A stretch of DNA of 64,000 nucleotides from Kudoa neothunni (taxonomy: Eukaryota; Animalia; Cnidaria): positions 3,027,189 through 3,091,188 of the forward strand of contig OZ199840.1 in the NCBI GenBank assembly GCA_964304625.1, in the 5' to 3' direction. The position numbers and the translations under genes are program-made. Positions 3,844-55,200 of the stretch are shown here, in pieces; position 1 is the first letter of the stretch, and every line of letters begins with the position of its first letter. The notes under the pieces were generated by a model. The model made no database searches. It was not told the DNA's origin and saw only the letters and a program-made list of their open reading frames with translations.

Positions 3844-6800
3844 TTATTTTACCATTCTTTTCAAATTATGTCTTATTCCACAGACGAATAAGTTCAGTGT
3901 TGTAGAAATTTCTAGCATAGACAGGTCATGGGTAAAACTATTTGTTTTTAAATTATTTAAATTCTCAATGACTTCAAGGATGGAACAAATATTGCGAGTT
4001 TTTTCATAATTTTCATCAGTAAACGATTCATTCATTGCATCGACTTCATTATTTATTGAGTTAACACATCGTTCTTCCGGACCTCTAACTGAAGTAAATT
4101 CTTCTTCAATAACACAATCTTCAGATTGATTTTCTGGGGAAACTACTTCCAGTAGAAATGATAGTACCTTTTGATCCACAGTTATTGAAATGTTAGGACT
4201 TTTTTTAAAAACGTTTTTGTTTATTTCTTTACTCATTAATTTCAACACTTCTTTCATCATATATATATATATCTTCAAGTAAATCTGGAGGATCGTAAAT
4301 TAAATATCATCCAAAATACTAATGGAATTAACTGTCAAAGGACCGTGAGTCGAAAAATTCAGTATGTGCCATGTGCCCATGGGGGTCATTTTTGAGCCCA
4401 CAATTATTTTCTTATTTTATTGCGCAATTGACCCAAAAATTTATCCTTGTAATAATTATTCATAACGCAGTTACATTAGCCATTTAAAAGTCTGTTCTAG
4501 AGAGAATAAAAGTGCAAAAAATGCAATTCATCCTTCGATAAAATATTATAGACATCTGCATCAAAATGCATGTTATTGTAGGTCTAATTATACGTTCTAT
4601 TGTATTTACAATGTCGAAAGTCTCTGGGAGTAAAATAACTGTGCTCAATGACATGTACACAAAAAATGCACATAAGCGACCGGGCGTGATATCAGACATG
4701 GTTTCCGGAAAACGTTGTTAATCTCAAAATTGAAGGTAGGATTAGGTCTGATTCAAGATTGTAAACATTTGAGTATGTTTATACATTCAAAAAAATAATT
4801 TAAGTATGAAAAATTTTAATTAGTTTCAGTTTAAAATAAATTATATTAGTTTGGGGATTTTTTCAAGAGAGAAATTTTTCCAAAGATAGCATTCCCTCGG
4901 TTTCTAAACTGCATGTTTGACAATAATCAATGTTTTTTTGGATTCTATGTGATGAACAAATAGGACTCTTGCAGATATAGCAACGTATATTAGTTTTTCG
5001 GTCAATATTTCGTGAACAAAGTACACATTGTGATCTTTTGCACGAACCAATAATTTCTACCGAACTAGACGTTTCCTTATTATCGATACATTTATTAAAT
5101 AGCTCGAAACTATATTTTAAATGCGAGTGACAATGGTTTTTGAAAGTCTGACGCAATATAACATCCGGTTTAATCAGTTCAATGCATAACTCTCTAAGAA
5201 AATTTTGGTGCCTGCTACGATCTTTGGATCATTGACTCTCCAACCAGGAAACTTCGATGTCCATATAACGTACGCATTCAGCGCCGCGATATCAATGAGA
5301 TCCATGAACATACGAAAAGACCATCTCCTCGTTGCTCTTGAACAGCTATAAAACTTAGTCATGCGATCTCCATTGTCAACACCGCCCTTCGTTCTGTTAT
5401 AGTGTTGAATCATTTCCGGTCGCCTTCTTTCACCCGATTCGATAGCATTGTCGTTTATTTCGGTAGATAGTAAAAAAACGGCACGATTTTTTTGGGGGAC
5501 ATAGGACACCATCGTTATGTCATCAGAGAAACAAAAGGTCGACGACAGTTCAACTTGGTTTGTCTTCTTTAGCAAATGTTCCGGAATACATCGATTGTTG
5601 CGTCTAATAGTTCCCGTTAATGTGATATTGTTTTGTAACAAAAAAGTAGCTAGAGGAACGGTTGTAAAAAAGTTGTCCGTTGTAACACCGCGACCAGAAC
5701 CGTAATATGGTTGGATCAACTCCTTGACTACTCTTTCACCTTGTTTTACGTCTTTAACACCACCAATCTTTCCAGTGTACGGTTGGATATTAAGCAAATA
5801 CGATGTTTCAACATCGGCGGCAACCCACAACTTCATCCTATAGCGATCTGGTTTATTCTTGATATATACTCTGAAAGGACACCTTCCGTGAAATGCCACC
5901 ATCCTTTCATCAACAGTAATGTGGAGGCCAGGAGAGTAATTCTGACCAAAATAATTATTTATTTCGGTAAATACCTCTCGAATGGGCTCAAATTTATCAT
6001 TCGACAAATTAAAACGATCTTCTCTAGTATGCTTATCATCGAATCGAATTACCCTATATATGTGGGTAAAACGATTTCGGGACATTGCCACCGAGAAGAA
6101 ATATTGCTTGAAAGTGGGTTGGTGTCCCAAATGTTTTTGAACTACACCTTTGATCCATTACACCTTCCAGCTACAATTAGTATTCCCAAAAAAGATTTCA
6201 ACTCTTCCATCATTATTTTTTTTCATTGTTATATCTTGCATTCGATTCACAATATTTATTAGTGTAAGATAAAACCTTCTCAAGGATGGAATCAGAAAAA
6301 AAGAGACTAAAGCATTCAAGAATGTTTTGGACATTTGTAGCATCACCTATTGGACCAGAGTTATTCGTGACAAAATTGTGTGTTCTAGTTCGTGTCTTTG
6401 TTTTATTGGTAAGATCCCATTGAACTCCTGATTTAGACATAGACATATCACCAGAAATTTTAAAATACTGTTCACCCTTGTACTCAGAACCGCACTATGA
6501 TTCGAACATTTCTACTATATTTTCATAGTATGGTGCGTCTGACAATTCACCTTCAAATTCGAGATCGCTGTCGATAGTTTCACCAATTACGATATTGTCG
6601 TCAATAAAATTATTGATATCGTTATCAAAAAGCATTTCTAAATATAAACTTCTTCGTAAATAAATTATCTAAACGTGAATAATATACTTTAATTACTCCT
6701 AAGGTTTAAAACACGTGTAGCCGGTAAATCCTGACTTAATCTTATGATGGCATCGTAATCCTTCGATAGGGAAAAGGAAAACCTATAATAAAAGCATCTC

Positions 6801-9988: not shown

Positions 9989-10306
9989 TTAATATAACGC
10001 TGTGATATTTAAAGTACTTGTTGAAAAATTTCCATTTTCACATTGCATTGCATGGATACCGATTTGATGATACCAAGTTTTTTCATCATTCGGCAAAATT
10101 ATTCTCTCATAACATATAAGTGACTCATGATTCAATTCTTTTAGTATTATTAGTCCATGCTTGATATTTATATTAATTAAATGAACAAAAAATAGCATTA
10201 ATAATTTTTGATTATTACTACCATTATAGGCTTCATTAAATTGAATCCAAAAATTTATAAAAAGAGAAAATAACATTATGCAGTTCATACTTATCTTGAG
10301 TGACAT
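9989..10306 (-). CDS. GDA1/CD39-like paralog C: exons 1-2 only, intron 1 donor mutated (possible pseudogene)
   Basis: N-terminal hydrophobic segment, then HGLIILKELNHESLICYERIILPNDEKTWYHQIG, which aligns with exon 2 of the paralogs starting at 21189 and 28683. No downstream exons found in the window. Confidence 0.75.
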   Translation of the reverse strand: MSLKISMNCIMLFSLFINFWIQFNEAYNGSNNQKLLMLFFVHLININIKHGLIILKELNHESLICYERIILPNDEKTWYHQIGIHAMQCENGNFSTSTLNITALY

Positions 10307-10859
10307 AATCGGGAAAAGTCTTAATCAATTAGAAAGGATTGTCTGTGTGCTTTTAATGCGAAATTATTGTGATTCTCAACCAAGTGGCATATATCGTGAA
10401 TAAAAAATTTTCTTCGAGAATTTTTAAATTATATTATTTAATTAATATTTTAAGGTGTTATGTCAGCGTATTCAGTTTTATGAAAAATCTATATTACCTG
10501 ATACTGAATCTTACTAGGCAAAAAACCATTCACAATAATTATTTTTCTTTTGGAGAATTATTATACCTATTTCTTAATTATCATCTAATTTTAACACATT
10601 AATTCTAAAAATAGACACTATTGCTCAATTTATTATTATAGTGTTTATTTTTTATAAAAAATTTAAAATGGATGCGTTTCTAAATACGATTTTTACGTAT
10701 CTTGACTTTAAGTACCATTGAAATATAGAAGAATTTGATATATATATATAAATGTAAAAATCCGATTAAACAACGTAACGCAATCATGCTTAAAGTAACA
10801 ACGGTTATTGTCATATATTTAAAACTGGAGTGTACGTGTCTGTTTAAATCGTAAGACGT

Positions 10860-11754
10860 CAAAACCTTGGGTTTTCCCCAAGATCTTGGGATTTTTTTAC
10901 TTTAAGCCAAATCTCGGGTTTTTTGTTTATCTACAAAACTTGTAGATTATTGAATTCTTTGGGAAAAATTTATAAATAATAAGTTTTAGAATTTGGTAGG
11001 ATAATTATACTTGTTTTTTTAGTAATAGAGAGAATTAAAATTACTCGAAATTTTAAAAAGATATCACGACCATCTGTAACGCGCTGGTTTCCGACCCTTG
11101 GATAATTGTTATTTAATCAATTGTTCTTATTATTCTGCGATTGTATTTGGGTATTTCTACGCTGTCTTAAGATTTTCTAGTTTTTTTAATAACATACTTT
11201 GAAGTTATTGACGTATATTATTTTAAATTATGCGTGAAAATTCAAACTGAGTTAAAAAAGCGTGGGATAATATGTGCTTCAATCAAGACTGGTTAAAGTT
11301 GATTTTAAAGATTCGTTTAACCAAGATGCTAAGGACATCAATTCCAATTTCTGCGATTGTTGAACGAATATTTTCATTAATGAACGTTTTATAAACTAAA
11401 TAAATCAACTCATTAAAGGTTGCAACCGTAAAATGTAAACTTCTCGCAAGGCAGTTGATCAGAAGAAATAATAATAAGTGTTAGATGTCGCGTCCAACAA
11501 ACCAACTAATACATGATGTGAGCAGCGGTGTTGCGAGCCGATGATACCTTGAACGCTTAGAAAATAGATAAAACTTGTTAGCTGAGGGTTGTGAGGTTGA
11601 TGAAGACGATTCAGTTGACGACAATAATTAGAAAACGCGTTTAAAATACAAATTTTTGTTATTTTAATAATAATATTATTAGGGTTTCTTTTCGAACTTT
11701 GGTTTTTAAGAGTTCACTCTTGGGTTTTTTCCGATAGTCTCATTGGGCGCCCTG
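10860..11754 (+). mobile_element. Degenerate hAT element remnant
   Basis: Frame near 11330-11440 reads SIPISAIVERIFSLMNVL*TK (hAT dimerisation motif). TTGGGTTTT subterminal repeats; right end ...gggcgccctg. Left end unclear. Confidence 0.55.
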
Positions 11755-14336
11755 GTACATCGGGCGAGGACACATGTGCAGCGAAAACTGTTTCCTTACG
11801 TAAGCATATGTTGAAACATTTGACTACATAACCATAAACCAAGCGACATTTTCTCGTAATTTTCTAACATAAAATATCGCGGAATTATTATTAACCGAAA
11901 TACAGCCCATTTCGTGTAATCATGCGGTCGACCAATAAGAATAAGGTTAAAAGAATTTGTTTGTGGATTATCGGGAGAATTACATTATTTGGCGCCAAAG
12001 TAATAATTAACTTCTCCAGGATAGATATTTAAATTCTCAGCTTCATGAGATAATCTCAATGATGAACATTTAAATCATCGGATCGGCAAAATTTACTAAA
12101 TAGAGAAACGCCTATGGCATGATATAACTAAGAATTTTCAGCATTTATTGAGATATAAAATATGTCCATTCTCAAAAGACATATTTTACTTAATTTTTTT
12201 AAAATATAACTTTTAGTATACATTTGAAAAGATAATAACGTTACAAAAATTCTCCTATTCACTTAAGGGTACTCAAATAATCAATATTTTCATTAAAAAT
12301 AAGGAATTTCCCGATGTCATATTGGAAAAAATAGATTAAAAATTACCAAATTACCTGTTTACGATTGAGGTTAATTTATTTCCGAGCTATAATCAATTAA
12401 AATGAACTTCTAATATATGTATATACAAAGAAAATGTGTTAATTATGATATTGAACATTCAAAAATTAATAATTATGTCATTTGGAGAAATTTTAAGACA
12501 GATGAAACCATTAGCGTGATATTTACAAATGATGTTTCATAACTCTTAAAATTTATGGCATATATTAGTTTTCTAATATATTTATTATCTTTTCAAAACT
12601 CTTAATATATTTTTTAAAGAGATTATGATTATTTAATAAAACACGTATGTTGTTATTTTTAATAGTTGCCATAAAGAAATAATTTGGTGGGTCTATACGC
12701 ATTATGAAAAAGATTTACGATGTGAGCATAGTTTTTCAATATTTTATTTTTTTACGAGTGTTTAAATAGAATCGTATTCTGTTTAAATCCCGGTAATGTC
12801 TCAATTTCTTATTTTTCATGAAGATTGAATAAAATTGAAATCGTATTTATTTTTTGAACATGTGTTATTCCTTTTTGGGGTTTTACCAATGTATGTCTCT
12901 TAAAAGCTGAAATAACCGTTATAATGATTTTCAGGACGATTAAATTATTTTTCGAGTTAAATTAAAACATCTAATTATTTGCTCACTGTAAACTTGAAAG
13001 TTATTATTCAAATAATTATCAGATAATTCTTAGGATGAAACTCAATGAATATGATATGAAAACTGTAAGAAAATATGATTTGTCTTATGCTACAAGTAGT
13101 TTTAGCGTCTGAATCAACAAGTACTATTGAAAAAAGAATGTTGACTCTCGCTAAGAATTATTCTGTTAGTAATTAGGAAACAAATTGTCAATTCCCTCAT
13201 CTTGATATTATTTGAAAATTTTATCAATAAAATGATTATTCTAAAACAATCGAATAATACATTTATCTTGAACATAAGTTGACATTCGATAAAACCGATA
13301 AATTGTTAATCATTACTGTACACTTTCAAGCCAAAAACATCTGATTACTATCAATTAAATAAAAAAATTTCAATCTACCTTGTATTAGTTTTTATTTTGG
13401 AAATTTTGGTGTTATTTTGAATGAATAGATTTATTTGAAATGTTTAAAAATCATGTCAAAATAGCGAAACGATAATTTCCCGTCCACACACGTTTGGTTT
13501 AAATCAGATAAGATTCTTCATAAAGTTATCAGAAACAAGTAATACTCGGCGTTATTATTTTATACGTTGAAATCTGCCTTTTTATTTGTTTAATTTCTTA
13601 TAATATTTAGACTTAAATCTTTAATTATAAAATATATGTATTTAATTTGTTTCAAAAAATAATTTAAAAATACAGAAAGTTACAATACATTAGGTTATTG
13701 AATGGTTATTTTTAATTCGTTGGCAAAATTTAGATTATTCAGAGCAAGTCATCTAATGTCAATAATTTGTAAAATAAGTTTAAAAATAACGATTATATCT
13801 TGTATATTCTTATATTTAGATTATGACATAAATTTATTTATATTTAGATTAACGTAATTGTTTAAAATTCAAAAAATAACCATAAACAAAAAAGGTGAAT
13901 CAAGACAGGAAAAATGATTTGAAGTCTTTATTTTATTGTGTGAATAAATTTCAGATAATGATTTGTCCAATTATATTTAACTAAAACTTTAAAAATCCTA
14001 TCGCACACTACCAATCAAAGCTATGATTTCGCGCTAGTGTCGATATAAAAATTATTGTTCCTCTATATTTGCATCTTAATCGTGAAATATTGCGTTCAAA
14101 ACACTCTAACGTCTCATGAAATATCTTTGCTTAAATATTATAAATGATAAGTTCAATACATTTGAGCCAAACATTTGAAATAACTCAGTCTTATTTTTCT
14201 TTTATTATTCTATAAATATTATTGAATATGTGGTGCGACTTGGCTAATCAAAATAAAAATTAACCATTGCCCTCTTTTCTAAAAAGAAAGATTATGTTGG
14301 GGACAGAGTACAAAAATCCATGAAATAATAAATATT

Positions 14337-17300
14337 TTAAAGATAAAAAATTTTGTTCCTGGAACGAAGTAATAGATATACGACGGCGACAAGCGTTATT
14401 AAGATAGGAAAGACCACAATTACTAATGTCAGCGTAAAAATTTTTAACATGAGTGGTCTCTTCTTATATTTCTGTATTGTAAATCTATGTTTATCGGATA
14501 CACTCCGAATAGTTGATTTCGATTCGAAGTAACTATCGGTGATAGCATCAATGGATCCAGATTCCGTGGGAAATTCGGGTTTGCGAGTGATATATGAACT
14601 CTCGAAAATTACAGAAATTTTGGCTGTAATTGAGTCTATTGGTTCTTGTCTAAAATATTTGATATTTTATAACAATAAATAATTTAATGACTTGGTCTTT
14701 TCCGAATAACTTGGAAGAATTGAGCCAAAAAAAGGATCAACAAATATATATTCATTAAAGCCATTGTATTCATAATAATTTCTAAATAATAAACTGATTT
14801 TAGATACATTTGATAAATTACATTTTTTTAAGAGCTGCAGTATCTTTTTCTACAAAAAGAGATCCGTCGCTTATAATAGTATATATAACAGTAATATGGA
14901 AGCATTCTAGATATAAAAAATAGCCATCCTTAATTGTTAGATATTAATATTATGGCAATAGAAATTGTTACGTAGTATCCATTAACAGAATGGACATAAC
15001 ATATACCATTTATATAATCAAGAATAGCTTTCATCAAGTCTGTTATTTTTTGTGGCTCAAACTCAAAATAATTATTATAAATCTATAATTTATCAATTGA
15101 AATATTTTATCACAACAATACCTCAAATTCATTTTTCTCCGACAATATTTTTCCTTTTCCAATTGCTGACAGGTTGCAATAATCGTTCTTCGAACAAGCA
15201 TTACTGTCATACATGACAGATCGGATCAATGAGGTACACTTCTCCAAGTCATATTTTCCCAGAAAGGTTGCTTGATATTTTGGTAAGGATTCCGACATGC
15301 AAACATTTTCCAAAGTATTATAGTTGAAATGTTTTTCATAATCAGTGATAATACAAGGGTGAAAATATTGTTCATTTTTCGCTCCCTTTATATTCAAGGA
15401 AAAATTTTAATTTAAAGAATTTTAATATATTTACTTTAGCTAGCTTGTGATACGTTGATATTAATATACGTTCGAGAGCCAAACAATAAAAATCATACAC
15501 AAAAGCCGTGTACTTTTCTTTTCTGAGAGAAAATTCTTTTATAATCCATTTATCGCTTGGGTTGGGTGGATTCTCGGCGAAAATTCCAATCGTAAAACCT
15601 ACATGTGTTGCAAGCATAAATGACTTTTGGTCTAAAATCTTAATAAATTATTTCAAATTCCACGCTCATTATAGAGGTTACTGATTCTTCAAAGTTAAAG
15701 TGGTACTTCAAAAGCTCCAACAACCCACTTGTATTTTCATCGAGTATTATTGATGAACCCAATATTATTTTATAATGATCAGAGGCCTCTATTTTTTCAA
15801 TGTCGCTCCGTAAAATTGTTCCCAAATCCTCTTCAATTTTTCTTGAGAAAAATTTAGTGACTGAATTATGAGTAAAATTTTATACAAGTGCATAAACTCC
15901 AGAGAATACATAATTTGTAATAAAATTTGTTCAAATTCTTCAGCTTCCCATTTGCATAATTTGGCAGCAAGTTTCATACAATCGTACAAATGATGATTCA
16001 CTTTTTATATAAGATGATGTTAGAATCGATATATATATATATATATATGTCTGTTTTGAAATTTAATAGGTATTTTAATAGTAAGTATGTACTGACTGGT
16101 AAACATTTAACCCCTTGAGGGTTGTTTTGACTAAAGCTAATTAGATGTACACGTAAAAGTGTTAATACCGACTTGTAATTAATTATCTAGAGCGGAATTT
16201 TAAAAATTATGTTTAAGCTATCAATAATTTTCATGGCAGGGATAGGCATACTTTCAAGTTTGGGTTTTAAATCAGTACATTATGAGTTTCCAAAGGGCCG
16301 CAACTTATACAACCTATGGTTAACCAATAACGTAACGCCACATATATATGTATAGTATAGTAAAGAAAAAAATAAATATAATTAAATATACACAATTATT
16401 TTTGGCCAATTAACTTTATAGCGGGATTGGGATCTTTTATATTCCATAAATATTTTAATTGGTTCATAGAATTTTTAACAAATATCTGAGATAATTAACG
16501 TTGCGTCTTTTATCCTATATTATTGAAGTTAAAAGACTAAAAAAATTTTTCCTCTCTAACAGGCTTTGGAGTTAAAATGACCAACAATTTTTTAGTTTGG
16601 TATATGCCGAAAATTATTATACAGATATGTGGAAATTAATGGAAATTCCTGCATAAGGAATATTGAGAAATTCAGTAATTATTATTAACGATAATCCGCA
16701 AAAATCCGACTAATTACGTGGTAGCATATACAGTCAACCACGGTTATTGCGCACTTTTGGTGGGTGGCGAAAAATGTATAACATCCATCTAATTCGAGGC
16801 TGCCAACGGAGTTTAAAAACCCCAATGTCGAAAAAACACTACTTTAAAGTACAACCAAAAATAGAATCGTGACTATTAAAGTTTTTAACCTTCTTCCGAT
16901 TCAATAATTACGTGTTCATGCATTGAAGTTAAATTTATCTTCGTATGATTGCCATGTTTTAGCACGAGCACTCACTCATACTTAATATCTTGTGTAGATC
17001 AACACACTCACAATTAATTACTACATAATTCAATGTATATTTTGAAATAAGGTTCAAATTTTCTAATAATAAGCGACAATTTTTACTAAGTAATTATGTA
17101 ATCGTGTCATATTAAAGAATCCAATGTGGTGTCGTTCAATATTGCAAATGTATAAGATCTACACGACAATGGTTCCCGCACCCCTAAGGGTGTGAACTGT
17201 GGGTTTGGGGTGCGAGATTCGACCACAATGGAAAATAATTTTTGAGAAATTTTGAGTCGGCTAAAGCTTATCGTATACAAGGGGGCACGAACTTCGTTTT

Positions 17301-20300
17301 CTCATAAAATGGGAGTGCGAGTCCAATTTTATTTGGGAAGCACTGCTGCATGATATAATTTGAATAGCATACGTCATTAAAAATATAGATATTAATGTCG
17401 TACATAAAAAAATTTAAGCATTCTTTAAGATTTACAGGTTTTCAATAAAAACCCAAGATTTTGTATTAAATAAAATAACTCCCATGAATCCAAGGTGATC
17501 ATGAAAAGCCCAAGCCATGGCAGCCCTGATGTAATTGTGCGCGTGTGGCAAAATAAACGCAAGTATTATCTTTAAAACGAATTAATTAACATTTATTCGT
17601 TGACATAATTTAACGAAACAATGCATTTATCGGTATATTTTACAATTTTAGATACTTTGTCCATCACTAGGCAGAAATCATTCAATCTATTTGAGTCTTG
17701 AGGTAAAATACTCAACGTATTTTTGAGAGAGCATCCTTTAGTTTCTTCGAGTTTAATTAATATTTAATATGGTACTTTTTATTGAGATTAGCATAATGTT
17801 GAGAATTTCCACTTAACCCTTTCGTGCCCAAAAGCTATCATAGTGACCACATGTATATTTTCTATATGGAAGCTTAGTTATGGGAAACATGGGCATAAAA
17901 TTAAATTTTTAATGCATTCAATCTTTTTTCATACTAATTATAGGAATTTTAAAGAAAATTTTGTAAGAAATTGTATAGCAGCAAACTTTAAGCCATTTTG
18001 GTCCCCAAAAGTCATTATATCATTTCATTCATTAACTAATACTTTTTCAATAAAATATAACACAAAAATTTTGAGTCGTAGATAACAACATAAATAATAT
18101 ATTTATTGAAGTTAAACATTTTTTTATGTAACTTTTAAAAAATAATGATGAAAATAATACATGGCCATTAGGATAGCCTTTGAGCAAATGCGCCAAGTTT
18201 GAACAAAGATGGATCGCTACGTTAAATATAACAACCTAAATAATGATAAATCAATATCAGAAGTAGTTATTCTTCCGGATGCTGATCTGTCAGAAACAGA
18301 CACGGTTTCTGATGATGAAATGGAAAAATATGCCAATTAAAGTATGATGATTTCTCTGTTTCTACGCCCGATGATATTGACTCTGAATATGATGATGTAG
18401 AGTACAAATAGACTAACGAAAATTTTGGCTTGATATTCCGGATGATGTTATTACTGTTAATGATTTTGAAGAAATTGATCGATCTTATTGATTACTTGAA
18501 ATTCTTCTTTAACAAATCACTAATCCAGATGATAACAAATGAAACAAACATTTATGCCACTCAATGTGGAATAAATTTTGTTACAGATATTGAAGAAATC
18601 CAAAAGTATCTAGGGGTTCTCATGTTGATGGGTATTGTTAGAATGCCTCGTTATCGCTGCTATCGGAGCACATCATTAGATTTTCGACACGTATCAAACG
18701 TTTTCTCTAGAAATCGATTTGATAAAATTTCCAAATTTATTCATTTTTCCAATAATGAAGATATCACTAAAGATCAAAACTCGGAAAATTATTATCGTTT
18801 TTCTAAAATTCGACCTTTTTAGAACATCTACGGTTCTCGTTTTTAAGTTTAAACCAGAAATGTGCAATGCAATCGATGGGCAAATGATTCCCTTAAAAGG
18901 AAGATGCTAAGCTAAACAGTACCTTCCCATTAAACAAACCAAATAGGGGTTTAAAGTGTTTGCTCGGTGTGGCATCAGTGGCGTACTCTATGATTTTATC
19001 TCGTATCGTGTATGAGGGAAAACCACCAGCAATTTCACAAACTTGTGGTCAAACTTGGAGTGATTTTGTAGTAAAATTATGCGAGACTTTACCAACTTCA
19101 AGATCCTTCTTTTTGTATTTTGATAAATATTTCACATCTATTCCATTGCAGCAACTGTTAAAGAAGCGAAACATCTACTCTGTTGTACAATAAGAAGGAA
19201 CAAAATTAAAGATTGTCCATTAACCCCGGTAAAACAAATTCAGCAAGAAAGGTCACGGTTCTTACGAAAGCTTTCAGGATACCAAAAATGGAATATTATT
19301 GACTCAATAATGTGATGGTTCTGTTGTTACGCTTTCTTCTACTCATTCTTCATCCCAGCCCCTTGGTGTAGTTAAAAAATTCGATAGAAGGGCTAAAAAG
19401 ACTACAAATATTGATTACCCCAATGTAGTTTCAGAATATAGTAAAAACATGGGTAGAGTTGACTTGTCAGACATGTCGATAGCATTTTACGAGTTTAACC
19501 ACAAATGCCGAATGTTTTGTATGCGAATATTCTTTTGGGGGTTCAATACCGCCATAACCAATGCTTGGTTATTATATAAACGAAATACAAAGGTCAATGG
19601 TGACAACTACAAAGTAATGGACCTTTTGTCATTTACTCGGTCTAAAAGTGAAAGTATGATTCACTTCAAAAAATCCAATATAGTAAAAAGCGTTGGCATC
19701 CTTCATTGGATGATTCTAAAGTTGTAGCTGTTGATCATTTGCATAAAAACAATCGAAACCCCTGTCAGAGTCAATAAGATTTGATAATGTCGACCATTAT
19801 ACTGAAATAGTGGACACAAAAGGAAGGTGCCGATTGTGTAAATAAAGAAAACAATTCAGCTGCATTCGATGTGGAATAACGTGTTGTAATGTTAAAACTC
19901 GAACCAGATTCGATGTAATATTTTTTCGCGCGAGTGCCCAGTGATCATTCTGCTCACCACGATGAAATATCGTAAAAAATAATAATTAAATATTTAATTT
20001 TTATTCAAAAATTTTTTATGTTAAAAAAAAATATTAAATATAATTTTTATAGCTCTAATTAAAAATTTAGGCGCTAAAGAGTTAAAATAGATGATTATTT
20101 TTATGAGTATAACGACCAGTTTCTATAATTTCGCACGTCTTTCATGATTTCCTAACTGATTAATACGATGGAATTGGCTTGTAAGATACATTAAAATTAT
20201 AAAAGCTGCGAATTAAAGGTGCACTCGATAATCTTGTGTATTTAGAAAGGTGTTCCTTCATAATAAATTACAATATATTTTCTTTATAAATATAACTTTG

Positions 20301-21189
20301 GAGATAACATTATAAACAAATATGGATTTACCAAGGTCTGGTTAGGTGAGAAAGAGTCTGGAAGGATGAAATTATCACAATAATATATTTGTTGACATTG
20401 TGTAAAAAATACCATTTAATAAATGAACAAATATTAATGTTGGGGCTGAAAGATTGCGCGTAGGTTTCTAAAGTAATTGCCGTCGGTCTGATATGACGTT
20501 ATCTGTGAAACCCTCTCTTTATTATATTAGCGGTTATATAAGAACCCATTAGCTTACCTTATTATTATCATATTTGAACGATGGTTTCTTGCCTTAACAA
20601 TTAAAATTTAAATTTTGCATAAAGCTTCACGAGCTGAAAAATAAGTTCTCGTGTCCTTAGTTTGTTTACCACTGTTCTATAGGGATCTCAAGGAAGTTTA
20701 CCAGACGTATCGGGATTTAGGACTGAATTTGATGGGGCCAGGAGCAACTGTATATATTATAATATAAAATATATGGATCGAAGCTTACTCTATAACAATA
20801 AAATTCAAATCTCCATCAAATTAATCAAACTCTTTATTTAATAAAATTATTAATTTATTAATGTTGAAGTGATAAGTCCTTCTTCAGACAATAAAAATGT
20901 AGAGTGATTAAAAATAATTATCTTATTTGTTACATGAGCAAATATCGCTTTTGGTAGTAAGTTTGTGGTACCAATCTTTCTCCTCCTCTGGTATAATTAA
21001 CCTTTTATAGCATATAAAAGAGGAATAACTTAATCGTTTGTATAGCACAATTCCTTTCTTTGGAATTTATGAAATGAAGTTAGTTTAAAAACGAATAAAT
21101 AAAAGTACCTTTGGATATTTATCATTTTGAGGTAAAATGTAAGAAATGAAACAGTTTAGAAACAGTACGATCAACATTTGGCATCTCAT
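14337..21189 (-). CDS. GDA1/CD39 (NTPDase)-like membrane protein, paralog A, 10 exons, catalytic motifs degenerate
   Basis: Hand-spliced intact ORF: exon 1 21189-21109, exon 2 21057-20934, exon 3 from 16000, stop at 14339-14337. CD39-like segments include DCMKLA, KEKYTAFVYDFYCL, HPCIITDY, LGKYDLEKC, CSKNDYCNL and LECFHITVIY. An S/T-rich stalk and TM helix follow. Confidence 0.85.
17167..17345. mobile_element. hAT (Buster/Charlie-type) MITE
   Basis: Ends caatggttccc / gggaagcactg; degraded 8-bp TSD ctacacga / ctgcatga. Confidence 0.65.
17817..20081 (+). mobile_element. piggyBac transposon (PGBD2/3-like transposase pseudogene) in intron 2 of paralog A
   Basis: TTAA at 17813-17816 and 20082-20085; TIR ccctttcgtgccca / taggcgctaaagag. 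ORF fragments contain AIDGQMIP, YFDKYFTS and MGRVDLSD. Confidence 0.92.
20200..20700 (-). pseudogene. Possible retroelement integrase remnant
   Basis: Minus-strand translation with many stops includes LEIPIEQW and REGFTDNVISD, resembling rve core motifs. Confidence 0.35.
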
Positions 21190-24100
21190 TACTCCTCAAA
21201 TTATTTGGTTCGAAAGTAAAGCTTTTACTTATTCAACGATAGAGATCACACTAAGATTTGTTAAGTAGTTTTCTATTACTGTGATCTACAGCTGGAATAA
21301 ATGATGTGGATTGTAGATTTTTGTTTCATATCTTTTAAATATAAAGTTTTATACACAATATTAACTGTTTTATCTAAGTAATTTAAATTTATCAAACTAT
21401 AAAATATAATTCGACGTTGATTGTGACAAAATAAACAATTATTGGTTAAATCGTGGTTTGTTGAGAAAATATTAAATAAATATTTTTTTATTCCTTAATT
21501 TGAAATTAAATATGCTACGACTATTCCTTAATGTTCATAAGTTATTTTAGTTATATAATAAGCACTTCAATGATTAAAGCAGGAGTAAACTGATAAAGGT
21601 TAAGTGTAACATTCTATCTAGATTTTACACATAGTTTTAGTAATGAGTGTCTAACAATAACAATTTTAATTTGGTATCATTTACGATATTAAAGATTATG
21701 TTGTTTACTTTAAATTATTTAATAAATTATTTTATTGTACTATTATAAAACAGGTACTGTAATTCCAATTCATATTTAATTAGGCTTATATCGTTAAAAT
21801 TTCAAGAGGTTATAATAAAAAGAAAACAGAAAGATTAGGTTTATTTATTCAAGAAATTATTTTCAAGACTGAGAAGAGAGATTTACAACTTAACTGATAC
21901 GAATTAGCCCCTAATAGTGAAAACAATTGTTGTTGCTTCTCAAATTAATCCTATTTAAATAATGAAAATCAGAGATATGGATTTTATGGAATGAAGCCTA
22001 TTATCTTCAAATTTACACCAATACCATGAATGATTGGTCGAAAATTATGTATATGGTACATAAAGAAATTTTGAAATTTTTAATAGATATTTAAAGCGGA
22101 TTATGAATGTATTAATGGCATCAAAATGCGTTTTTAGGGCTTTTTCTTAGATATCTCGTATTCATGTCTATAAGTTAAATAAATCTTATTTTTCCTTGAT
22201 CGAAAAACACGTAGACCCTCCCATTAGTTTCTGTGTAACGTATAATTAGTTTTTTAATTAAAATGTCGCATATATAACTTACATGTTATGTAGATACCAC
22301 TGATTGAGCATATAACTTAAATTGTTATCAATAAACTATTTTTGCTTAAATAACTATAAAATTTCGATTAGCATACTTATTACATAATGGTTATGCTAAT
22401 TAATATTAATAATTAATTAAGGATTCAAGATTCATCATCTAGGATGATAATACACATATTTTGTTGATCTTAATAGTTTTAAATAATTTATTACAATTCC
22501 CTAAATTTTATCATTTCGCAAACTTAAAAAAAGTTATATGGGGACATTTCACGGTCTAAATAATACGGAATGCTTTTCACTTTATTACTCAGATTCGAAA
22601 AATTATACTTATTTTAAGTTAAGAGGAACCTTTTGATTTTATGGAAACAATTAGATAATTATAAATTAGGAAGAACTTCTCTTTTCAAAAGATAAAAATA
22701 TAAATAATAACGGTCCACGTAATATTTTCATGTGGATCGACTCCAAGTTTTTTGTCTCAATTTTAAATTTTCGTAAACGTTATATTCAAAAATTAATCAT
22801 TTCTATTAAAAAATCGTAAATTAATAAAGAGGGAACTTAATAAACTTTATTGCTCTCATTCTATTAGAATTAAGAAAGATTTACTCACCCAGTTTTTCTT
22901 TTGGGGACTTTACATCCCTCTAAGATGAAAGATCAGAGGAAAAATATTGTTTGTTAAATTCTCCTTATTGATATTTTAATAAGCTTGAGGCAATATGTTT
23001 TTGTTTAAAATATATTTTTTCTAATCAGAATTTACCATTTGGTACTGACTATTGCAGTGGATTCGTTTAATCCCCATGTGCGGATTGCCTAACGCCACAG
23101 ATGGGAATATTTACTAAAATAACTCTTCCACCAAACATTTAATTTTAAAAATGCATACAACAATGAATTAACTATTTAAAAATAAATTCTCAAAATAAAA
23201 TAAATCAAATTACTTTTAATATATAAATTGGCCAAATATGCCATCTTTATTTTATATTTTTCTTGAGTGGATTCATATATAAGTTAATGTACAAGCGATT
23301 ATCAAATCTTAATGTGTTCGTTTTATATAACAAGAAGTGTCGATTTACCCAATACATTAATTGAGAATGTGGCAACTTTTGTTAATAAGACTCGTTCTTT
23401 ACAATGATTGTAAATATACTATTTTACAATATAAGTTCGGTTATAATAATTATTTTCACATTTAATTGGTGATTTTAGTTTTTATTAGTGGCTTAATCGA
23501 TTAAAGTTAAAATTTTTCGTTTTAATATTGATGTTAATTATATGAAACATTACCGTTTAGTTTATTTAAGAGATGTTTTCTGTTGTAGATTATAATTAAT
23601 AAGTTGGTATAGCCGTTTACGATTTTTAATTAAAAAAAATCCATCATTTAAATCGGTGTTTATTTTTTAACCGACCTAGTGCTATGGTATTATGGACACA
23701 AAATCGGAGTAAACAGGCTTAAAAATCACAATTTATTAATCTACCATTTAAATACAAGTATGATAGCATGCATTAAGGATCCGGTGACAATTTCGCCATA
23801 TCCGCCGTCTTTATATGCGTTCGTTATGAGAAGCTTCGTTCAATTGCGACCGAAGATAGAGGAATTGATGTTAACATTAAAAAAAGTTTTTAATGTATTG
23901 GATACATCGAGTGTATCCGTTTTTTTATATATTTCAAAAGATATCATCAAATGCATGTGTTTTATATTAACCACTTTAGAAATTATAATTTGAATCTAAT
24001 TTTATAATTACTATTAATGCAAAATTACCCTCAAAATATATTATAATGCAACATGCCACAAGGCCAAAATATTATAAAGATTATTATAACCAAGAAGAGA

Positions 24101-25019
24101 CGTTGACATTAATTTTGATATTGTGTCGTTTGTAACAAGAGCATTCGATAAATATCTTGTTGCTGTGGCTGATGTATAGGATTAACTCTTCGTCGCTTTG
24201 CTAAAATTAAGATAGGCTAAAAAACAATACACTTATATTGGTCGATACACCAATAAAAATGTATTATGTAGTTTTATTCAAGGGAATTTGCCATTTATAA
24301 TTGATGGATTTATAGAAATTTTAATTTTTTATATGTTGTTCGATATATGAAATATTTATGAATGAGAATTTTTATTGATAATATTGCAAAGGAAAAGTTT
24401 TGTTGATAAAATATTGAAAAGGACCTATGAGATTTTATTTATTATCATTTAGACGTATCAAGCACTGTTTAAGTTTTATGTGTTTATGCTTTACAACGTT
24501 ATTTAGGAAAGGGATTTTTTTATATTCGCGATGGAAATGATAACGAGAAATCTTTATATAGCGATAAATAACGCATTTCCAGTGATATTGGATTATCATT
24601 CCAGTTTTCTAATTATTGCAATCAATTAAAAAAAAATAAAACGTTGGAATTTAAAATAAATTTTTTTCCTTTAAATAATTGATTTTTAGGAAAAAACTTA
24701 ATTTTTGGCACCGTTATTCGGTGGACCTCCTTCGGCACACACAGGTTTTTTGAGCACCGTTTTGGGGGATTAATTTATTTGAAGTGTATTTTTCAAAAAT
24801 CCTTTGAAGATAATTTTCCTGTTTCAAAAAATTATTATTTCAATATTTTGCGGTTGTACGCTTTTGCTAATGTTTTTTAAGGAATAGCTAAAGCGATTCC
24901 ATTTTTTTAATTACATTGAAGTATTTCGAGCATGAAAATAGATAGCAATGAAAATGATGAATAAATCTTATTTTTTTCAAACATAATCATATAAATGTAA
25001 ACTATAAAATGAGTATATA

Positions 25020-28000
25020 TTAAAGCTCATATATTCTATTACGTCGGCGACAAATTCGAAATTTGAGGAACATAAGTATTGAAACTATTAGAGAAACCCC
25101 GACAACCAATGACATGGCATATATTTTGAGATTATTCGTTCCCGCATGGCCTTGAAGGACTGTAAATCTTTTTCTTTGTTCCAAATGCACTATTACAGAT
25201 CGAAAATCTGCAGACTCAACCCAAAAAATAGTTTCAGACGATTTTACTCGAGTGTAATCTATGGTGGAAATGGGAGACTTAGATTCAAGGCTAAATCCAA
25301 GCGTAGAACTAAAATATGTCGATTCAACGCTAAATTCGGAATATGAAGCTAATGGTTGTGATTTAGTCGTAGATTCGATTGAGGGGGCTAGAGATTTCGA
25401 CCTTAAAGTAAGCTCTAAGGAGGAAATGAGAGAATCAGATTCGGTGGTCAAATCATCGGTCACAGAATAAATATGAGTACTCTCTGTGTCAACAAAAATT
25501 TCGGATGTTTCTGAAATCATTGGAGTAACTCTGAGAAATTAAATGACAAAAAATAAGTCAACGTAACTAAAATACTGTTTCGAACCTTGCTGCAATAACG
25601 AACCAAACGCAGAATCAAAAAATATATGTTCTTTATTGGGAATATAATCAGGGTGGTCTCTTAACATAAAAACGTTATTTATAGCCTAATAAATATAAGT
25701 TTACATTTCTATTAACGATACAGTAATATCTTCCAAAAATAGGTTTTTTTCAGTTAAAATTGTGTAAATGATACTTAAATGAAAACATTTTTGAAATATG
25801 TAAAAATTACTCTAAGGATAATGACATCAATTCAACTTGTTGGTGTTAAACATTACATAGTATCCATATTTTTGGTAGTTGACACATTCCGCTTCCTTGT
25901 GATTAATTAATATTTCCTTAATGCGGCTTATCCTATTTGGTTTAATATTGATATAATCGTTATATATCTAAATTTTATGGAAAAAATCATTATATTTAAA
26001 TAAAACCTCAATCTTCTTATGTTTCAAGAAAATGTCTCTAATTCTGACGGTCGAGAAGTTACAATGATGATTGTCTGTGCAGATTCTACTATCGTAGATG
26101 ATGGCGCGGATAAGCGGAACGCATTTTTCAATATTGTAATCTCCGACGAATTTTTCATTAAATGTTTGTACACGTTCTGATACACAAACATCGTTTTGAC
26201 GGCCATTGCTATGCTCGTGTCTAAAACCACTGATGATACAAGGATGAGTGATTAATTCGTTATGTTTTCCCTATATATATATATATATATATTTGTTGAA
26301 GATTGATTTAGAATAATATTGATAATTAGTTTACCTTGGCTAACTCGTAATAGGTTGTAATCATGATTTTGTCGAATGTCATGCAATAAAAGTCGTTTAC
26401 AGCTGCAGTATACTTTTCATCTCGAATAGAAAATTCTTTGATCATCCAAGCATCGAATATGTCTACACCGATTTGAAAAATTCCCACAGAAAATTTGATG
26501 CGGCCCATAAATATAAAGGGCTTTGTATCTAGAAACTAACATATTATTATAGACATCAACAACTATTTCATTACTGATTCATCGAAATTATAGTTATACT
26601 TTATTAGTTCAACCAATCCACTAGTGGTTTCATCGATGGCGACCGAAATGTCCCAAAATATATTGTAGTACGTAGAGGAGGCAATTTTTTCAATGTCTTC
26701 TTGCATAAGCGTTTTTATTTGCTCTTCATTTTTACTTGAGATAAATTATTTACATTAAATTTTTATGAATATTTACTGATAGAAAAAATCGAGCGAATAA
26801 ACGACCTGTAATAAAATTTCATTTATTTCGTGATTTTCCCATTCACACACATCAATGATTTCATATATGCAATTGCATCTTGTGGGACCCCCTATTAGAA
26901 TTCAATGATATGAAAATATTTAATAATCAAAATAATTAATAGTTTATTTATTTTTTTGACTTCGATTAGTTTTAAAAAGCGGGTTAAATTGTTTCCATTT
27001 TTCTATGTTAATGTCCCCCAGCGTTTAACCTTTATTGTACTGAGCGACGTATATAAAGCACCCCATGGGAGTTATTCGCGTCTAAATCCGAATATAAATC
27101 GTTTATCATATGCATCTCTCAAATACTTTTAAAAAATTCTTCTTACATTTTTTAACGTAAGAATTAAGTTAATTATCCTTTATTTATTACATAGTTCTTT
27201 TTTTTGAAAAAATAATTCCATAACTGGCAGAACTTTCAAAATTTGTTTATTAACACAAGTGATTTTATATTTTTGTCGAATTTTATGAGAAAATAATTAT
27301 AAAACTATCACATATGATTTGAATATGGAATTTTTTGTCAAACTCAGTTTAATCAGGATTAGCGACCATTAACCACAATTAAGTAAGCTGGTATAGTCCC
27401 TGCATTACATTGAACCATCTCTATCTATTGGACGTGTAATTTCTATAATGGTTTTATGCCGTTTTCTGAAAATAAACGTAGTAGTTATTCTTTTATTAAT
27501 ATTTAATCCGAGAACGGGTATATATATATATATATGAAAACTGATAAACTAATTGATACTTTTTTTCGAGTGACAATAAAAGTGACACTAATCTTCAAAT
27601 TTTAGGTTGTTTTGCAATCACCGTGCCTACAATTCGCCAGTCTGGAAAATAAAAATCTATATTCGTTTATCATATATTAAGAATTATTTGACATTAAATA
27701 CTATGGAAAATATGAAAATAGGAGAGAAATATTAACGTAGGCGACGAAAAAGAAATAAATACTCTTTAAATTAAATTATTATAATTTTAAAAGTAAATTA
27801 ATTTATATGTAAAATAACTAACTTATAAATACTTATCTAGTCAAGCTTGCCTTTTGCGGGAGATCTTAATAGCAGGATTGTACACGATGTTTTAATTACC
27901 ATGTTGCCAATTTTATTGATTGATATCTTTTAATAATTGTATCTATGCTACTTTTGCGCAATTTGGTGATTTATTTGGATCAAAATATGACAAATTTTAA

Positions 28001-28683
28001 GGTATTTGATGCGTAGTTTATTATTCCGTCCGTAATTAGTATATTAAATTGATACCACGCAAGATATTGTTTTTTAACCAACTTGTGTTTAAATTCAAGT
28101 TTTTTAACATCATTTAATTTATTGAATGTTTAGTATATTGATGTAAAATTCCAAGAAATTTATTTTGTAAATAAAATGATTTCTATTGGAGCAATTGGCA
28201 GATATCTCATTTCGAAAAATGCTTAATTTTTTAGCACTCAGTACAGTACAGCAAAGGTTAATATTAAAATACACTTCATTTAAACTGCTCACAAGCATCC
28301 TTTATGAATGTCTTGATTTAGTTATTACATATTTTATATAAAAAAATAATTGAAATAGTAACTTTATTTGTAATATACATTAAGGTTGATGTCAAATAAC
28401 ATTAACACCGATCAAATGTGGGGTTACTTACATGAACAAGATCCACCTTTAATCTTTAGTTGATTAACCCAATCGTTGGTATTTTGTAGTGGCAATGGTC
28501 TAATGTAACAAATATGCGAAGAATGCGACAGCTTCTTAAATATAACTACTCCATGCTTTTCAATTCATTAATGATACGAATAAATGCTTGACAAAATACT
28601 TTTTGATTTTTCTCTTCATTCATTGTTTTATAGCGGTGACTTAAAATCGCTAACAATAGAGTATATATCAATCTGGATCCCAT
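25020..28683 (-). CDS. GDA1/CD39 (NTPDase)-like membrane protein, paralog B, 10 exons, catalytic motifs degenerate
   Basis: Hand-spliced intact ORF MGSRLIYTLLLAILSH...NQK|HGVVIFKKLSHSS..., with the same intron positions and phases as paralog A. The last exon (ORF 25520-25020) has a long S/T stalk, a TM helix and the tail RRRNRIYEL. Confidence 0.85.
27029..28257. mobile_element. Non-autonomous piggyBac-like element in intron 2 of paralog B
   Basis: TTAA at 27025-27028 and 28258-28261; inverted ends cctttattgtactgag / ctcagtacagtacagcaaagg; no transposase ORF. Confidence 0.8.
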
Positions 28684-29451
28684 GATTATGTCAAATGTAA
28701 AAATCCCCCTTCTAATAGATTTGCAACGAGAATAACTCAATATTTTTACTACAAAATTTAATTGTTGAAATTCCAGTCAACTAATAAATTTAATTGATTT
28801 ATGCATATTTTATTTGTTATCACACATAGAGATATATTAGAAATAAGGATCGCTCCAAGTATTAACTAATTAACAAAGTTTGATGTTTATTATTATATTG
28901 GACGAAAATTCGGTGTTGACTGCAATAAAGTCAATGTTAATACATTCCAAATTCTAGTTTTCTTCAATAATTTTACATATAAATTATCAAATATTAATTA
29001 AATAAATTTTTTCATGTTTAAATTTTATAAAATATTGGAAAAAATCGGTAAAAGCATAAGGATCGGAAAAATTTGAGGCTAAGTGCATTTTTTATGCATA
29101 AAGCTATATACAATTTCTTTAAGTTGGAGATTTGACGAAAAAATTTAAAATTTTATTGTACTTATAAATGATTATATATGTTTATCGCTAAAAATTAATG
29201 TGTGAGAAATTAATCAATTATTTATTTACGTCTAGTTTTAATATACTTAATTTTTTTTGGCATAACATCTAATCTTCTGTATTAGCTATCACATTTTACA
29301 ATTGATAATTAGTTTAAATATCGCTGTTTTATAATTGAAATATCTAACATACTTATTCAAGATAATTCCATTATGGTTTTCACCGGTAATTTGTTAGTGT
29401 GCACGAATCAGACCATTACGGTTGAGTATAAATTTTATTTTCTATATAATA

Positions 29452-52286: not shown

Positions 52287-55200
52287 ATGGGAGTTGATCG
52301 TGGTGTAGTAATAGGTGCCGGGTTAGAAACTAGTCGATTATACCACCATTATCGAATGCTAGGGTTGGTTTCCAATCAAGTTAGGGCTGTAATTGAAACA
52401 AGAGGCAGTGAATGTTTTGTTATAAGTTGTACTGGAAAAGTATTCCAAACCTACAACGTAATTTTCTTTTTTCCGGCCACATCCTATTTAACTAATATTT
52501 TTAGTGTGAAAAACTCAATCTAGTTGTCTCAAGTAATTTCCATTGTTTGTAGCGAATTGATTTGGTTGTAATTGCGGGAAAGGTGATGAATTCGAAGAAG
52601 AGATAACTCACCTTCTGATCATTCCCCAAAATGGTCACGTAATCGTTGGATATGGGAAAGGTAGAGTAAAAATTCTTAAACGAGGAACCCAGGTAATTCT
52701 TATCAATGTTCAATGAAATGGTTTTTTTCATTAACAATGTCAAATCGAATTAAGGTGATCGACGAGTTCGAACACCATAGCAAAATCAAGTTAATGATGT
52801 TGGCAGGAGATGCTATTTTGATTGTCGATGAACACAACACAGCAGTTGTTCAAAATCTCCAAAGTCATGGTATTTTTAAAAAAAACAAACCATCATTCAT
52901 TTTTCTATGCAATATTTTCAGAGGTGCTGTTGGAAATGTCGATTGGAAACAATAATTTTGATATAAGTGCAATATGTCATCCATCCACTTATTTGAATAA
53001 AATTTTGTTTGGTGCACACGATGGTTCGTTACAACTATGGAATATTAGAACAGGTCGACTGATTCATAGTTTTGAGAAAAACTGGGATGATGTCGAAATC
53101 ACAGCACTTGTTCAATCCACTGCGGTAGATGTCGTTGCCATTGGGATGGCTAACGGCTACATTTATCTTTTCAACCTTAAAAGTGGATCTGTTCTTTATA
53201 CTTTTCATCAAAGTTATGGTTGTGTTACTTGTATTAGTTTTCGCACAGGTGAGTCATTTATTATGCGCTTCCCATTTGTAGTATATTTATCAAATTAATC
53301 CACATTACAGATGGTTTTGGTTACATGGCTACAGGAAGTCGTGATGGACACATAACAATATGGGATTTGGATCGCAATCAACTTTCCTATTGCATAATGG
53401 AGGCCCATCAATCCGCAGTGACCACTCTTGAATACCTTCCAAATAGTACTATATTGTTGTCTACCAGTGATGACAATTCGATAAAAGTATTAATGTTGGG
53501 TTTTTGGTTGAGTGGAGTCGTATTCATCATTATATTCTAGGAGTGGATTTTTGATGGTAAACCAACCAATGAAAGTCTTTCAGATGAGGGTCATGCCAGA
53601 TTGTACAAGTATAGATCGGGACATTGTTCTCCGATCCAAAAACTCCGTTTCTTCTACTCTAACACCAAATCCACCGTCAACACCAACAATCAGTACACCA
53701 TTCTAAGCTGTGGACAGGACAATTCACTTCGATATTTCAATCTTTATCGAGACGAACAGAATGTAGAAATATCTCAAGGTAAAATAGAGCATCAGTCCAA
53801 AAAGAAAAAGGTGGATTTGGCCGACCTACGTCTCACTAGCATTGTTGATTTTTCTTTTGCTAATCAAAGAGAGCATTTTTGGGACAACTGTGTCACCTGC
53901 CACAAGAAGGACCACTATCCTCGAACGTGGAACATAGGTAATCGTAAAATTGGCAAACACATGCTTGGTTACAACACCAAAAGCTCCTTCAATATTGATG
54001 GTCAATTCCCGTTGGTGTGTGAAATGACCAGATGTGGCAATCTGGCAGTGATCGGTTACAATAAAGGATCAGTTGTGGTGTACAATGTACAGTCGGGACT
54101 TTTCTACAAGGAGTTCACTAATAAAAAAGCTCGAGCGCACAACCACCCTATCGTTGGTCTCTGTGTCGATAGTATCAACAAATATATGGTTAGTGTTGAT
54201 GAAAGTGGTCTGATGAAATTTTGGAATTTCCACAAGTCTATTCAATTGGGTCAACTATACTGCGAGACCGAACGTGTCTACAATGTGAGACTACATCCTG
54301 AGAATCTGTTGATGGCGATTGCTGTTGTTGACACTGATCTTAAGAAAAATTTTATTAAAATTATTGATATTCAATCCCACCAAATAGTTAGAGTTTCTAA
54401 GGATCGCGATTTCAAACACATCAACGATATGTCGTTTACTGCTGATGGCAAATGGTTGATTGTTGCTACCGCGGATGGTCTACTATCTACTTGGGATGTT
54501 GTCACCAATCAATTGATTGATTGTTTTGTCGCAGATCACGTTATCCAATCGATTGATCTTTCCCCTGGTGGAGATTTTTTAGTGCTAGCATACAATGATC
54601 AACGTGGTATTCATGTGATAGCCAACCGGTTTATTTTCGATCCAACTACTATTGTTGTTCCTCTTCCATCCGACTATAACCCATTCCGAAATCAAGCTGC
54701 CATCACCACCAATTCAACTAATTCTAAAGTGACCAATGAAAATAGTGATTGGCAAGCTGTGGTTCAAAAATTTATTAACTCCAAAAAAAACTACAATAAT
54801 GTTTTAATGAAAATTGGTCTTTTCCCCGAATCAAGATGGCTTTCACTGTCCAATATCGATCTTATTAAAGAGAGAAACAAACCCAAACAATCAAAGGTAA
54901 TTCTCAAAAGTGCCCCTTTCTTTCTGCCAACTGTTAGTGGGTTGCAACCCTCATTTGATACAGTTAACAACACTACAGACGGTTCGCATTCAATCAATGC
55001 AAGTGATCTTAGCTCTCGATTCAAACGACTTAAAACCACAGACCCAATTTCCCCACTTGTACAACAATTAAACGAGTACCAGAAAAAGGACAAAAAAGCT
55101 ATGATCAACTTGGTTGAATACCTATCCAAACTTAATCCCTCTATTATTGATTGTGAACTGAATTACTTGTCGGTCGATATGGAAGGTAGCGTGGAAGTTT

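Follow-up and report, generated by a model that had tools for sequence, protein, structure and literature searches.

A family of CD39-related membrane proteins without apyrase-conserved motifs, expanded in the myxozoan fish parasite Kudoa neothunni

The ecto-NTPDases known so far, with CD39 among them, are active enzymes, which parasites employ to dampen the purinergic signalling of their hosts. In a stretch of 64,000 nucleotides (nt) from Kudoa neothunni (GenBank assembly GCA_964304625.1, contig OZ199840.1, positions 3,027,189 to 3,091,188 of the forward strand; in the following, this entire stretch is termed the window and its first letter is position 1), we analyzed three related genes, g1, g2 and g3, for which an original prediction made from the letters of the window had proposed a tandem family of CD39-like surface proteins devoid of catalytic activity. 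The picture that emerged is that of an expanded and unannotated family of membrane proteins whose C-terminal lobe is, as judged by profile matches and cysteine spacing, descended from CD39/NTPDase, and in whose members the consensus motifs of the apyrase-conserved regions (ACRs) are absent. With moderate confidence, we regard these proteins as probable non-catalytic, CD39-derived surface molecules that would serve recognition or adhesion. A natural, expanded and motif-less branch of CD39 was not found described in our search of the literature.

The window has the appearance of eukaryotic DNA with mini-introns and a guanine-plus-cytosine (GC) content of about 30%. All three paralogs reside on its minus strand, and the open segments of g2 and g3 align with each other exon by exon. 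Exon junctions were set where GT..AG borders kept the frame open and both copies agreed. As had been predicted, g2 and g3 are thereby spliced into uninterrupted open reading frames (ORFs) of ten exons with the same succession of intron phases (0,1,2,0,0,0,0,2,2). GT..AG is present at every junction (Table 1). Exon lengths in g2/g3 are 81/84, 124/124, 115/115, 160/160, 204/201, 264/264, 111/111, 107/107, 90/84 and 313/511 nt. Eight introns per gene measure 39-64 nt, whereas intron 2 reaches 4,933 nt in g2, as given by the coordinates of exons 2 and 3, and extends over 1,540 nt in the case of g3. The identity of the encoded proteins amounts to 35% when summed over the exon-wise alignments and to 24-51% for individual exons. 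A chance origin of this gene structure is excluded because open frames of exon size are found again, in unchanged succession, at more than 14 loci of a genome with 30% GC.

Three paralogs on the same strand had been predicted, and this is correct for the strand, but the third copy, g1, contributes just its exons 1 and 2 to the window, and its body looks broken. The paralogy of this part to exon 2 of g2 and g3 is evident from tblastn, and exons 3-10 follow outside the window, about 12.5 kb further on (C3:3021500-3027188, here locus L004, positions 3156 to about 1513 therein). In g1 exon 4, a TAG takes the place of the expected GT donor, and in exon 10 the frame changes ahead of the transmembrane (TM) helix, leaving the TM-bearing end in another frame. 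No model of g1 could be closed with canonical splice sites. Because of the TAG at the exon 4 donor and the frame change in exon 10, g1 is probably a pseudogene, barring errors of the low-coverage assembly.

Intron 2 (20933-16001 in g2 and 28431-26892 in g3) often spans 1-5 kb at other loci of the family as well (L008, L009, L013 and L015) and is about 12.5 kb long in g1, compared with about 49 nt for introns of this genome in general; in L006 and L014 it comprises merely about 200 nt. The one in g1 harbors a remnant of a piggyBac-type transposase (5174-6130, minus strand, ORF of 318 residues, DDE_Tnp_1_7 with an expectation value (E) of 5.6e-61), and a further, degenerate remnant of this type with a fragmented ORF is located in intron 2 of g2 (18209..19727, plus strand; Pfam DDE_Tnp_1_7, E 1.4e-18 on 18430-18822).

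Table 1. Coordinates of the family genes in the window and of canonical NTPDase genes elsewhere in the genome
Feature	Position	Strand	Description
g1 exons 1-2	10042..10306	-	ATG at 10306, donor after 10042
g2	14337..21189	-	10 exons, 522 residues, uninterrupted spliced ORF
g2 exons 1-5	21189-21109, 21057-20934, 16000-15886, 15841-15682, 15638-15435	-	
g2 exons 6-10	15385-15122, 15082-14972, 14928-14822, 14781-14692, 14649-14337	-	stop included
g2 exons 4-5	15435..15840	-	region corresponding to ACR3 and ACR4
g2 exon 6	15122..15385	-	cysteine-rich part of NTPDase domain II, five invariant cysteines
g2 exon 10	14337..14649	-	Ser/Thr-rich stalk, TM helix, short basic tail ending in ..FYL (hydropathy, composition)
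g3	25020..28683	-	10 exons, 586 residues, uninterrupted spliced ORF, paralogous to g2 exon by exon
g3 exons 1-5	28683-28600, 28555-28432, 26891-26777, 26734-26575, 26535-26335	-	
g3 exons 6-10	26270-26007, 25967-25857, 25811-25705, 25659-25576, 25530-25020	-	stop included
g3 exon 6	26007..26270	-	same domain as g2 exon 6
g3 exon 10	25020..25530	-	longer stalk (about 138 residues, 32% Ser+Thr), TM helix, tail ending in ..YEL
L001	C2:7.278 Mb		canonical NTPDase gene, 119 bits on PF01150
L003	C1:0.886 Mb		canonical NTPDase gene

The ancestry of the family is most clearly recorded in exon 6. In an exon-by-exon scan, g2 exon 6 matched positions 229-307 of the Pfam profile GDA1_CD39 (PF01150) with 20.8 bits (E 1.8e-4), and matches below the gathering threshold were obtained with five of the 14 exon 6 sequences collected from the paralogs; the threshold itself (24.9 bits) was reached by no exon. 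A six-frame scan of the genome with PF01150 returned canonical NTPDase genes only and left the members of the family undetected. A profile of the 14 exon 6 sequences (A3), aligned by hhalign with 12 vertebrate NTPDase3 sequences (A4), matched columns 289-368 with 95.7% (95.4% in a repeat) and an E of 9.2e-9, at an identity of about 26% and with five out of five cysteines in register. The relation to GDA1_CD39 that the original prediction had suggested thus appears as a sub-threshold match of exon 6 to the Pfam profile and as a profile-profile alignment, while the gathering score was not attained exon by exon. An hmmsearch of 1.84 billion representative proteins with A3 gave seven matches. Three of them are true GDA1_CD39 proteins, namely the unnamed P0003 (E 2.3e-5), NTPDase3 from Danio (P0007, E 6.6e-4) and a near-identical fragment of the latter (P0004, E 1.4e-4); one is a metagenome fragment of 91 residues that belongs to the family itself, and three (P0002, P0005 and P0006) are unrelated cysteine-rich or low-complexity proteins. 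Among sequences in the PDB, rat NTPDase1 is the top match of exon 6 (E 0.25). Exon 8 is placed collinearly on NTPDase columns 427-446 by hhalign (E 0.002). An AlphaFold model of exon 6 alone yielded no meaningful match in Foldseek.

The cysteines tell the same story. Both g2 and g3 carry them at positions 212, 239, 257, 278, 292, 298, 344 and 362, and the intervals between these eight residues (27, 18, 21, 14, 6, 46 and 18) differ by 0-5 residues from those between C266 and C426 of Danio NTPDase3 (28, 19, 26, 13, 6, 46 and 22). In 13-14 paralogs the cysteines of the C-terminal lobe are invariant. It had been claimed that the cysteine scaffold of CD39 is kept, and from exon 5 to exon 8 this is indeed the case, but the N-terminal lobe differs, with four cysteines instead of the two present in cell-surface ecto-NTPDases. 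Because the profile matches and the scaffold of eight cysteines agree, descent of the C-terminal lobe from CD39/NTPDase is well supported.

The middle and N-terminal regions are less readily assigned. Exon-wise hhalign produced no significant match for exons 2, 3, 4, 5, 7 and 9, Pfam gave none for exons 2-5, exon 8 and two stretches in which exons 4 and 5 are joined by an open intron, and a search of the protein collection with exons 4-5 returned nothing usable. In L005 and L014, the intron between exons 4 and 5 stays open in frame, and a contiguous reference sequence could therefore be used, which includes about 14 intron-encoded residues and to which the exons of the other paralogs were added as rows (alignment A7). 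The top-ranking hhalign alignment of A7 sets exon 4 against NTPDase columns 157-199, where ACR3 is situated (E 0.64). An AlphaFold model derived from A7 consists of two hairpins followed by a helix; its predicted local distance difference test score is 62.5 for the entire model and 71-84 within exon 5. When this model was compared by Foldseek with 350,542 PDB chains, ranks 1-44 were occupied almost entirely by NTPDases (rat NTPDase1 and 2, enzymes from Legionella and Trifolium, and human NTPDase4), although with weak scores (E 4e-3 to 0.1, TM-score about 0.3). Given that the model is partial and the scores are low, we take the list as specific, not conclusive, support for a possible descent of exons 4-5 from NTPDases. 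The tie is weaker still for exons 2-3, which would correspond to ACR1 and ACR2 and lack any match: it consists of their position and a short resemblance ('G-I/V-V-L ... F-x-C-Y') to the strand pair of ACR1. Of the CD39 ancestry originally put forward for the whole protein, the C-terminal lobe is therefore the part that stands.

All motif strings quoted in the original prediction were found in the translations. As a test of its claim that every ACR has been replaced, we used the patterns DxGSSxT (ACR1), ATAGMR (ACR2), GxEEG (ACR3), DLGGxS (ACR4) and WxLG (ACR5), the first four of which were included in the pattern scan. Neither the window nor 22 fetched loci related to the family contain any of these four in any of the six reading frames. 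Two canonical NTPDase genes that reside elsewhere in this genome served as positive controls in the same scan and retain their motifs (DAGSTGS, ATAGMR and GVLEGVYQW in L001, DAGSTGT and DIGGSS in L003; the translation of L001 also contains ELGGAS, a variant of ACR4). They belong to the same superfamily as the proteins described here but differ in having kept the ACRs, and L001 also lacks the cysteine at the 'SFxCYG' position. The absence of the ACR1-4 consensus from every copy is therefore supported, but exon-wise comparison revealed no homology of the regions that stand in for ACR1 and ACR2, and for ACR3 and ACR4 the motifs are gone while the correspondence of the replacing segments is backed by weak structural or positional support.

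In the family, the position of the ACR1 aspartate is variable (H, Y, V, F, L and others). A gap-free alignment anchored on G-L...N-Y shows Thr/Ser in place of the catalytic Glu-Glu of ACR3, and the DLGG of ACR4 has given way to hydrophobic residues with a single conserved glycine. Conservation is instead found in two family-specific motifs, SGLxELLKYNY in exon 4 and FxDPxFGS in exon 9, both of which map to structural helices of NTPDases and not to the phosphate loops. The loss of the ACR motifs strongly suggests that the ability to hydrolyze nucleotides has been lost as well.

The predicted proteins share a common layout: behind an N-terminal hydrophobic segment comes the head resembling CD39, which a Ser/Thr-rich stalk connects to a TM helix with a short tail. 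The N-terminal segment is signal peptide-like, comprises 11-17 residues and precedes the strand equivalent to ACR1 by about ten residues. Collinear exons are present at about 14 loci, where the terminal exon encodes a stretch with 10-35% Ser+Thr ahead of a strong TM helix (Kyte-Doolittle hydropathy 2.1-3.1). The anchoring typical of cell-surface proteins, as originally predicted, is thus borne out, and membrane attachment via stalk and helix is supported, with the head probably facing outward. Stalk length ranges from about 43 to 138 residues among the paralogs. In L005 (1156-1518, minus strand), the stalk consists of the octapeptide TIDELFTP, repeated in tandem about 12 times. The short cytoplasmic tails of g2, g3, L004, L005, L006, L008, L009 and L014 end in a conserved leucine after Y, N, D or A (..FYL, ..YEL, ..ANL, ..RDL, ..YNL, ..VDL, ..NAL and ..NDL), which could be a sorting or PDZ-type signal.

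According to the published description, the K. neothunni genome was assembled from HiFi reads of yellowfin tuna into three chromosome scaffolds and a mitochondrial contig of 18,219 bp, at about seven-fold coverage and with 30.41% GC and introns of 49 nt; 5,316 proteins were predicted with protein hints only, since tuna RNA-seq contained too few Kudoa reads for transcript-based annotation (PMC12239612). The assembly used here comprises chromosomes of 17.15, 12.04 and 11.05 Mb in addition to the mitochondrial piece, and a DNA run covers the window at a depth of about 6.5. In six-frame searches of this genome, a two-sequence profile of exon 6 gave 33 matches (E <= 1) and the 14-sequence profile gave 39 (E <= 0.01), while exon 5 was matched 18 times. 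About 15 loci form the core of the family (E < 1e-22); they are distributed over all three chromosomes, and several are clustered (C3:9.64-9.65 Mb, C2:5.83-5.88 Mb and C3:10.34-10.37 Mb). L010 (C2:16192-16708) and L014 (C3:4858-5366) are situated 16 kb and 5 kb, respectively, from chromosome ends. Candidate gene starts numbered 16, in 15 loci of which two are identical duplicates. A gene builder with a rigid template closed five of the 16 from exon 3 to the stop, a lower bound; a permissive splice walker was discarded because it 'closed' almost anything.

With the exception of a single close pair, the paralogs are 24-57% identical. Synonymous substitutions are saturated at this distance, so that ratios of non-synonymous to synonymous rates could not be calculated. 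The close pair, L012 and L019 (C2:11.538 and 11.578 Mb), lies 39 kb apart and is 100% identical over 3,250 bp, covering the whole gene from exon 2 on, which indicates either a very recent duplication or a haplotypic duplication of the assembly. Among about 15 billion public proteins, no counterpart of the family was present apart from the one metagenome fragment of 91 residues, and the protein collections searched contained no full-length relative. A 901-bp contig from an environmental metagenome (L018; ENA ERZ28624939, scaffold_21136) with 30% GC carries exons 4-8 of a family member, with neither their order nor the arrangement of the mini-introns altered, and the identity of its exon 6 to the copies in the K. 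neothunni genome does not exceed 45%. From the exon order it follows that a related organism, evidently another myxozoan, also has the family. This restricted expansion agrees with the lineage-specific family that had been proposed.

Taking these observations together, we propose that the family derives from a cell-surface ecto-NTPDase of the CD39 type. The disulfide-stapled C-terminal lobe and the overall length and order would have been retained, the phosphate-binding and catalytic motifs ACR1-5 would have been replaced, and the head would have come to stand on a probably O-glycosylated Ser/Thr-rich stalk of variable length, followed by the TM helix and a short basic tail, in many cases with a terminal leucine. 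Expanded to about 15 core loci, with up to about 35 more remote exon 6 matches, in a myxozoan parasite with few predicted genes (about 5,300), such proteins would not hydrolyze nucleotides, and on the surface of the parasite their heads may mediate recognition or adhesion. With the cell-surface ecto-NTPDases (CD39/NTPDase1, 2, 3 and 8) they share the length and order of the ectodomain, the eight cysteines of domain II, the profile homology of exon 6, a hydrophobic N-terminal segment about ten residues ahead of the ACR1-equivalent strand and a C-terminal TM helix. They differ from them by the absence of the ACR1-5 consensus, the two additional cysteines in the N-terminal lobe, the short, signal peptide-like character of the N-terminal segment (11-17 residues), a Ser/Thr-rich and sometimes tandemly repeated stalk between head and C-terminal TM helix, and their expansion to at least 15 copies.

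A parallel would be provided by the cholinesterase-like adhesion molecules neuroligin, neurotactin and gliotactin. In these proteins, the dead fold of an ecto-enzyme forms the extracellular head and serves as an adhesion domain. Their parts are arranged in a comparable way: the signal peptide precedes the head, and an O-glycosylated stalk rich in Ser/Thr leads to a single TM helix and a short tail, which ends in a hydrophobic motif. The likeness is purely architectural, as their alpha/beta hydrolase fold is unrelated. The ecto-NTPDases of other parasites and pathogens (Schistosoma SmATPDase1, the Toxoplasma NTPases, Legionella Lpg1905) likewise belong to the CD39 superfamily and are deployed at the host interface, but they are active and have intact ACRs, none of which is found in the Kudoa family.

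Among the alternatives, it is unlikely, though worth considering first, that the head binds ATP, ADP or another nucleotide without hydrolyzing it and thus acts as a sensor or decoy that buffers or reads nucleotides at the interface between parasite and host. The fold derives from a nucleotide-binding enzyme, and E-NTPDases are commonly used by parasites at just this interface, but both phosphate-binding loops (ACR1 DxGSS and ACR4 DLGGxS) have been replaced, and the substitutes are not conserved within the family.

We are similarly doubtful that the genes are decaying relics, that is, largely unexpressed or pseudogenized copies that segmental duplication has scattered through a genome rich in repeats. 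The stop and the frame change in g1, an exon 6 split between frames in L015, a split exon 4 in L009 and the 11 out of 16 candidate gene starts that fail the rigid template would all fit this explanation. No RNA reads map to positions 24900-28800 in the three runs found by species label (X5-X7), a result that is uninformative because the label is evidently that of the host and Kudoa reads are scarce in tuna RNA-seq. Against decay, the spliced ORFs of g2 and g3 remain open over 1.5-1.7 kb at 30% GC, none of the 18 splice sites deviates from the canonical form, every cysteine is kept at just 35% identity, exons are conserved where introns cannot be aligned, and the exon order recurs in the contig of a distinct organism.

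The reading as non-catalytic surface proteins could be extended to a variable surface coat, in which a non-hydrolyzing CD39-derived head on a mucin stalk of variable length would let an intracellular muscle parasite engage or evade its fish host; such a coat might have been seeded by capture of an NTPDase3-like gene of the host, and the head might still bind nucleotides in the ATP-rich myofiber. This wider version is speculative, and we give it little credence as a whole.

That the proteins are still enzymes, with shifted catalytic residues or with an altered chemistry or substrate, is improbable to an even greater degree. A fairly conserved Asp/Asn-Glu just upstream of the lost Glu-Glu in exon 4 and the conservation of SGLxELLKYNY and FxDPxFGS could be taken as hints of a new active site, but all four ACR patterns tested are missing in every copy, and the conserved motifs are located on helices that are structural in NTPDases. 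Capture of an NTPDase3-like gene from the host, followed by loss of activity and expansion, would be compatible with the reading as non-catalytic surface proteins. The only named NTPDase that passes E 1e-3 among the 1.84 billion proteins is indeed a fish NTPDase3, that of Danio, and the host of the parasite is a fish; an identity of just about 26%, ten exons with typical Kudoa mini-introns and the AT-rich composition make this origin very improbable. Finally, a chance cysteine-rich pattern unrelated to CD39, for which the many exons without a match and the unrelated proteins in the exon 6 search might be invoked, is hardly credible, given that Pfam, the library-wide search, hhalign, the spacing of eight cysteines and the Foldseek list converge on NTPDases and exons 4, 6 and 8 are placed collinearly on them.

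Should the proteins be made and displayed, CD39 would join the short list of ecto-enzyme folds that have been reused as non-catalytic surface modules. Kudoa species are commercially damaging parasites of fish muscle for which almost no surface molecules are known, and the family would then be a candidate for their host interface. It would also illustrate the extent to which lineage-specific coding sequence escapes an annotation that relies on protein hints only, as was the case for this genome (PMC12239612).

Several further features were noted in the window and in the assembly. An ORF of 453 residues (34895-36256, minus strand) shows a weak match to the hAT dimerization domain (E 0.003) and is probably the remnant of a hAT transposase. 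A large exon of WDR36/Utp21 (53601-55448, plus strand, 615 residues) shares no more than 33% identity with its named orthologs from animals. Positions 57912-58805 on the plus strand hold a leucine-rich-repeat ORF of 297 residues. The mitochondrial piece has 43-45% GC compared with 30% in the nuclear genome, and its cox1 gene (L026:2629-4005, minus strand, G000:C4) is extremely diverged, with TGA read as tryptophan and AGR at conserved arginine positions (genetic code 4).

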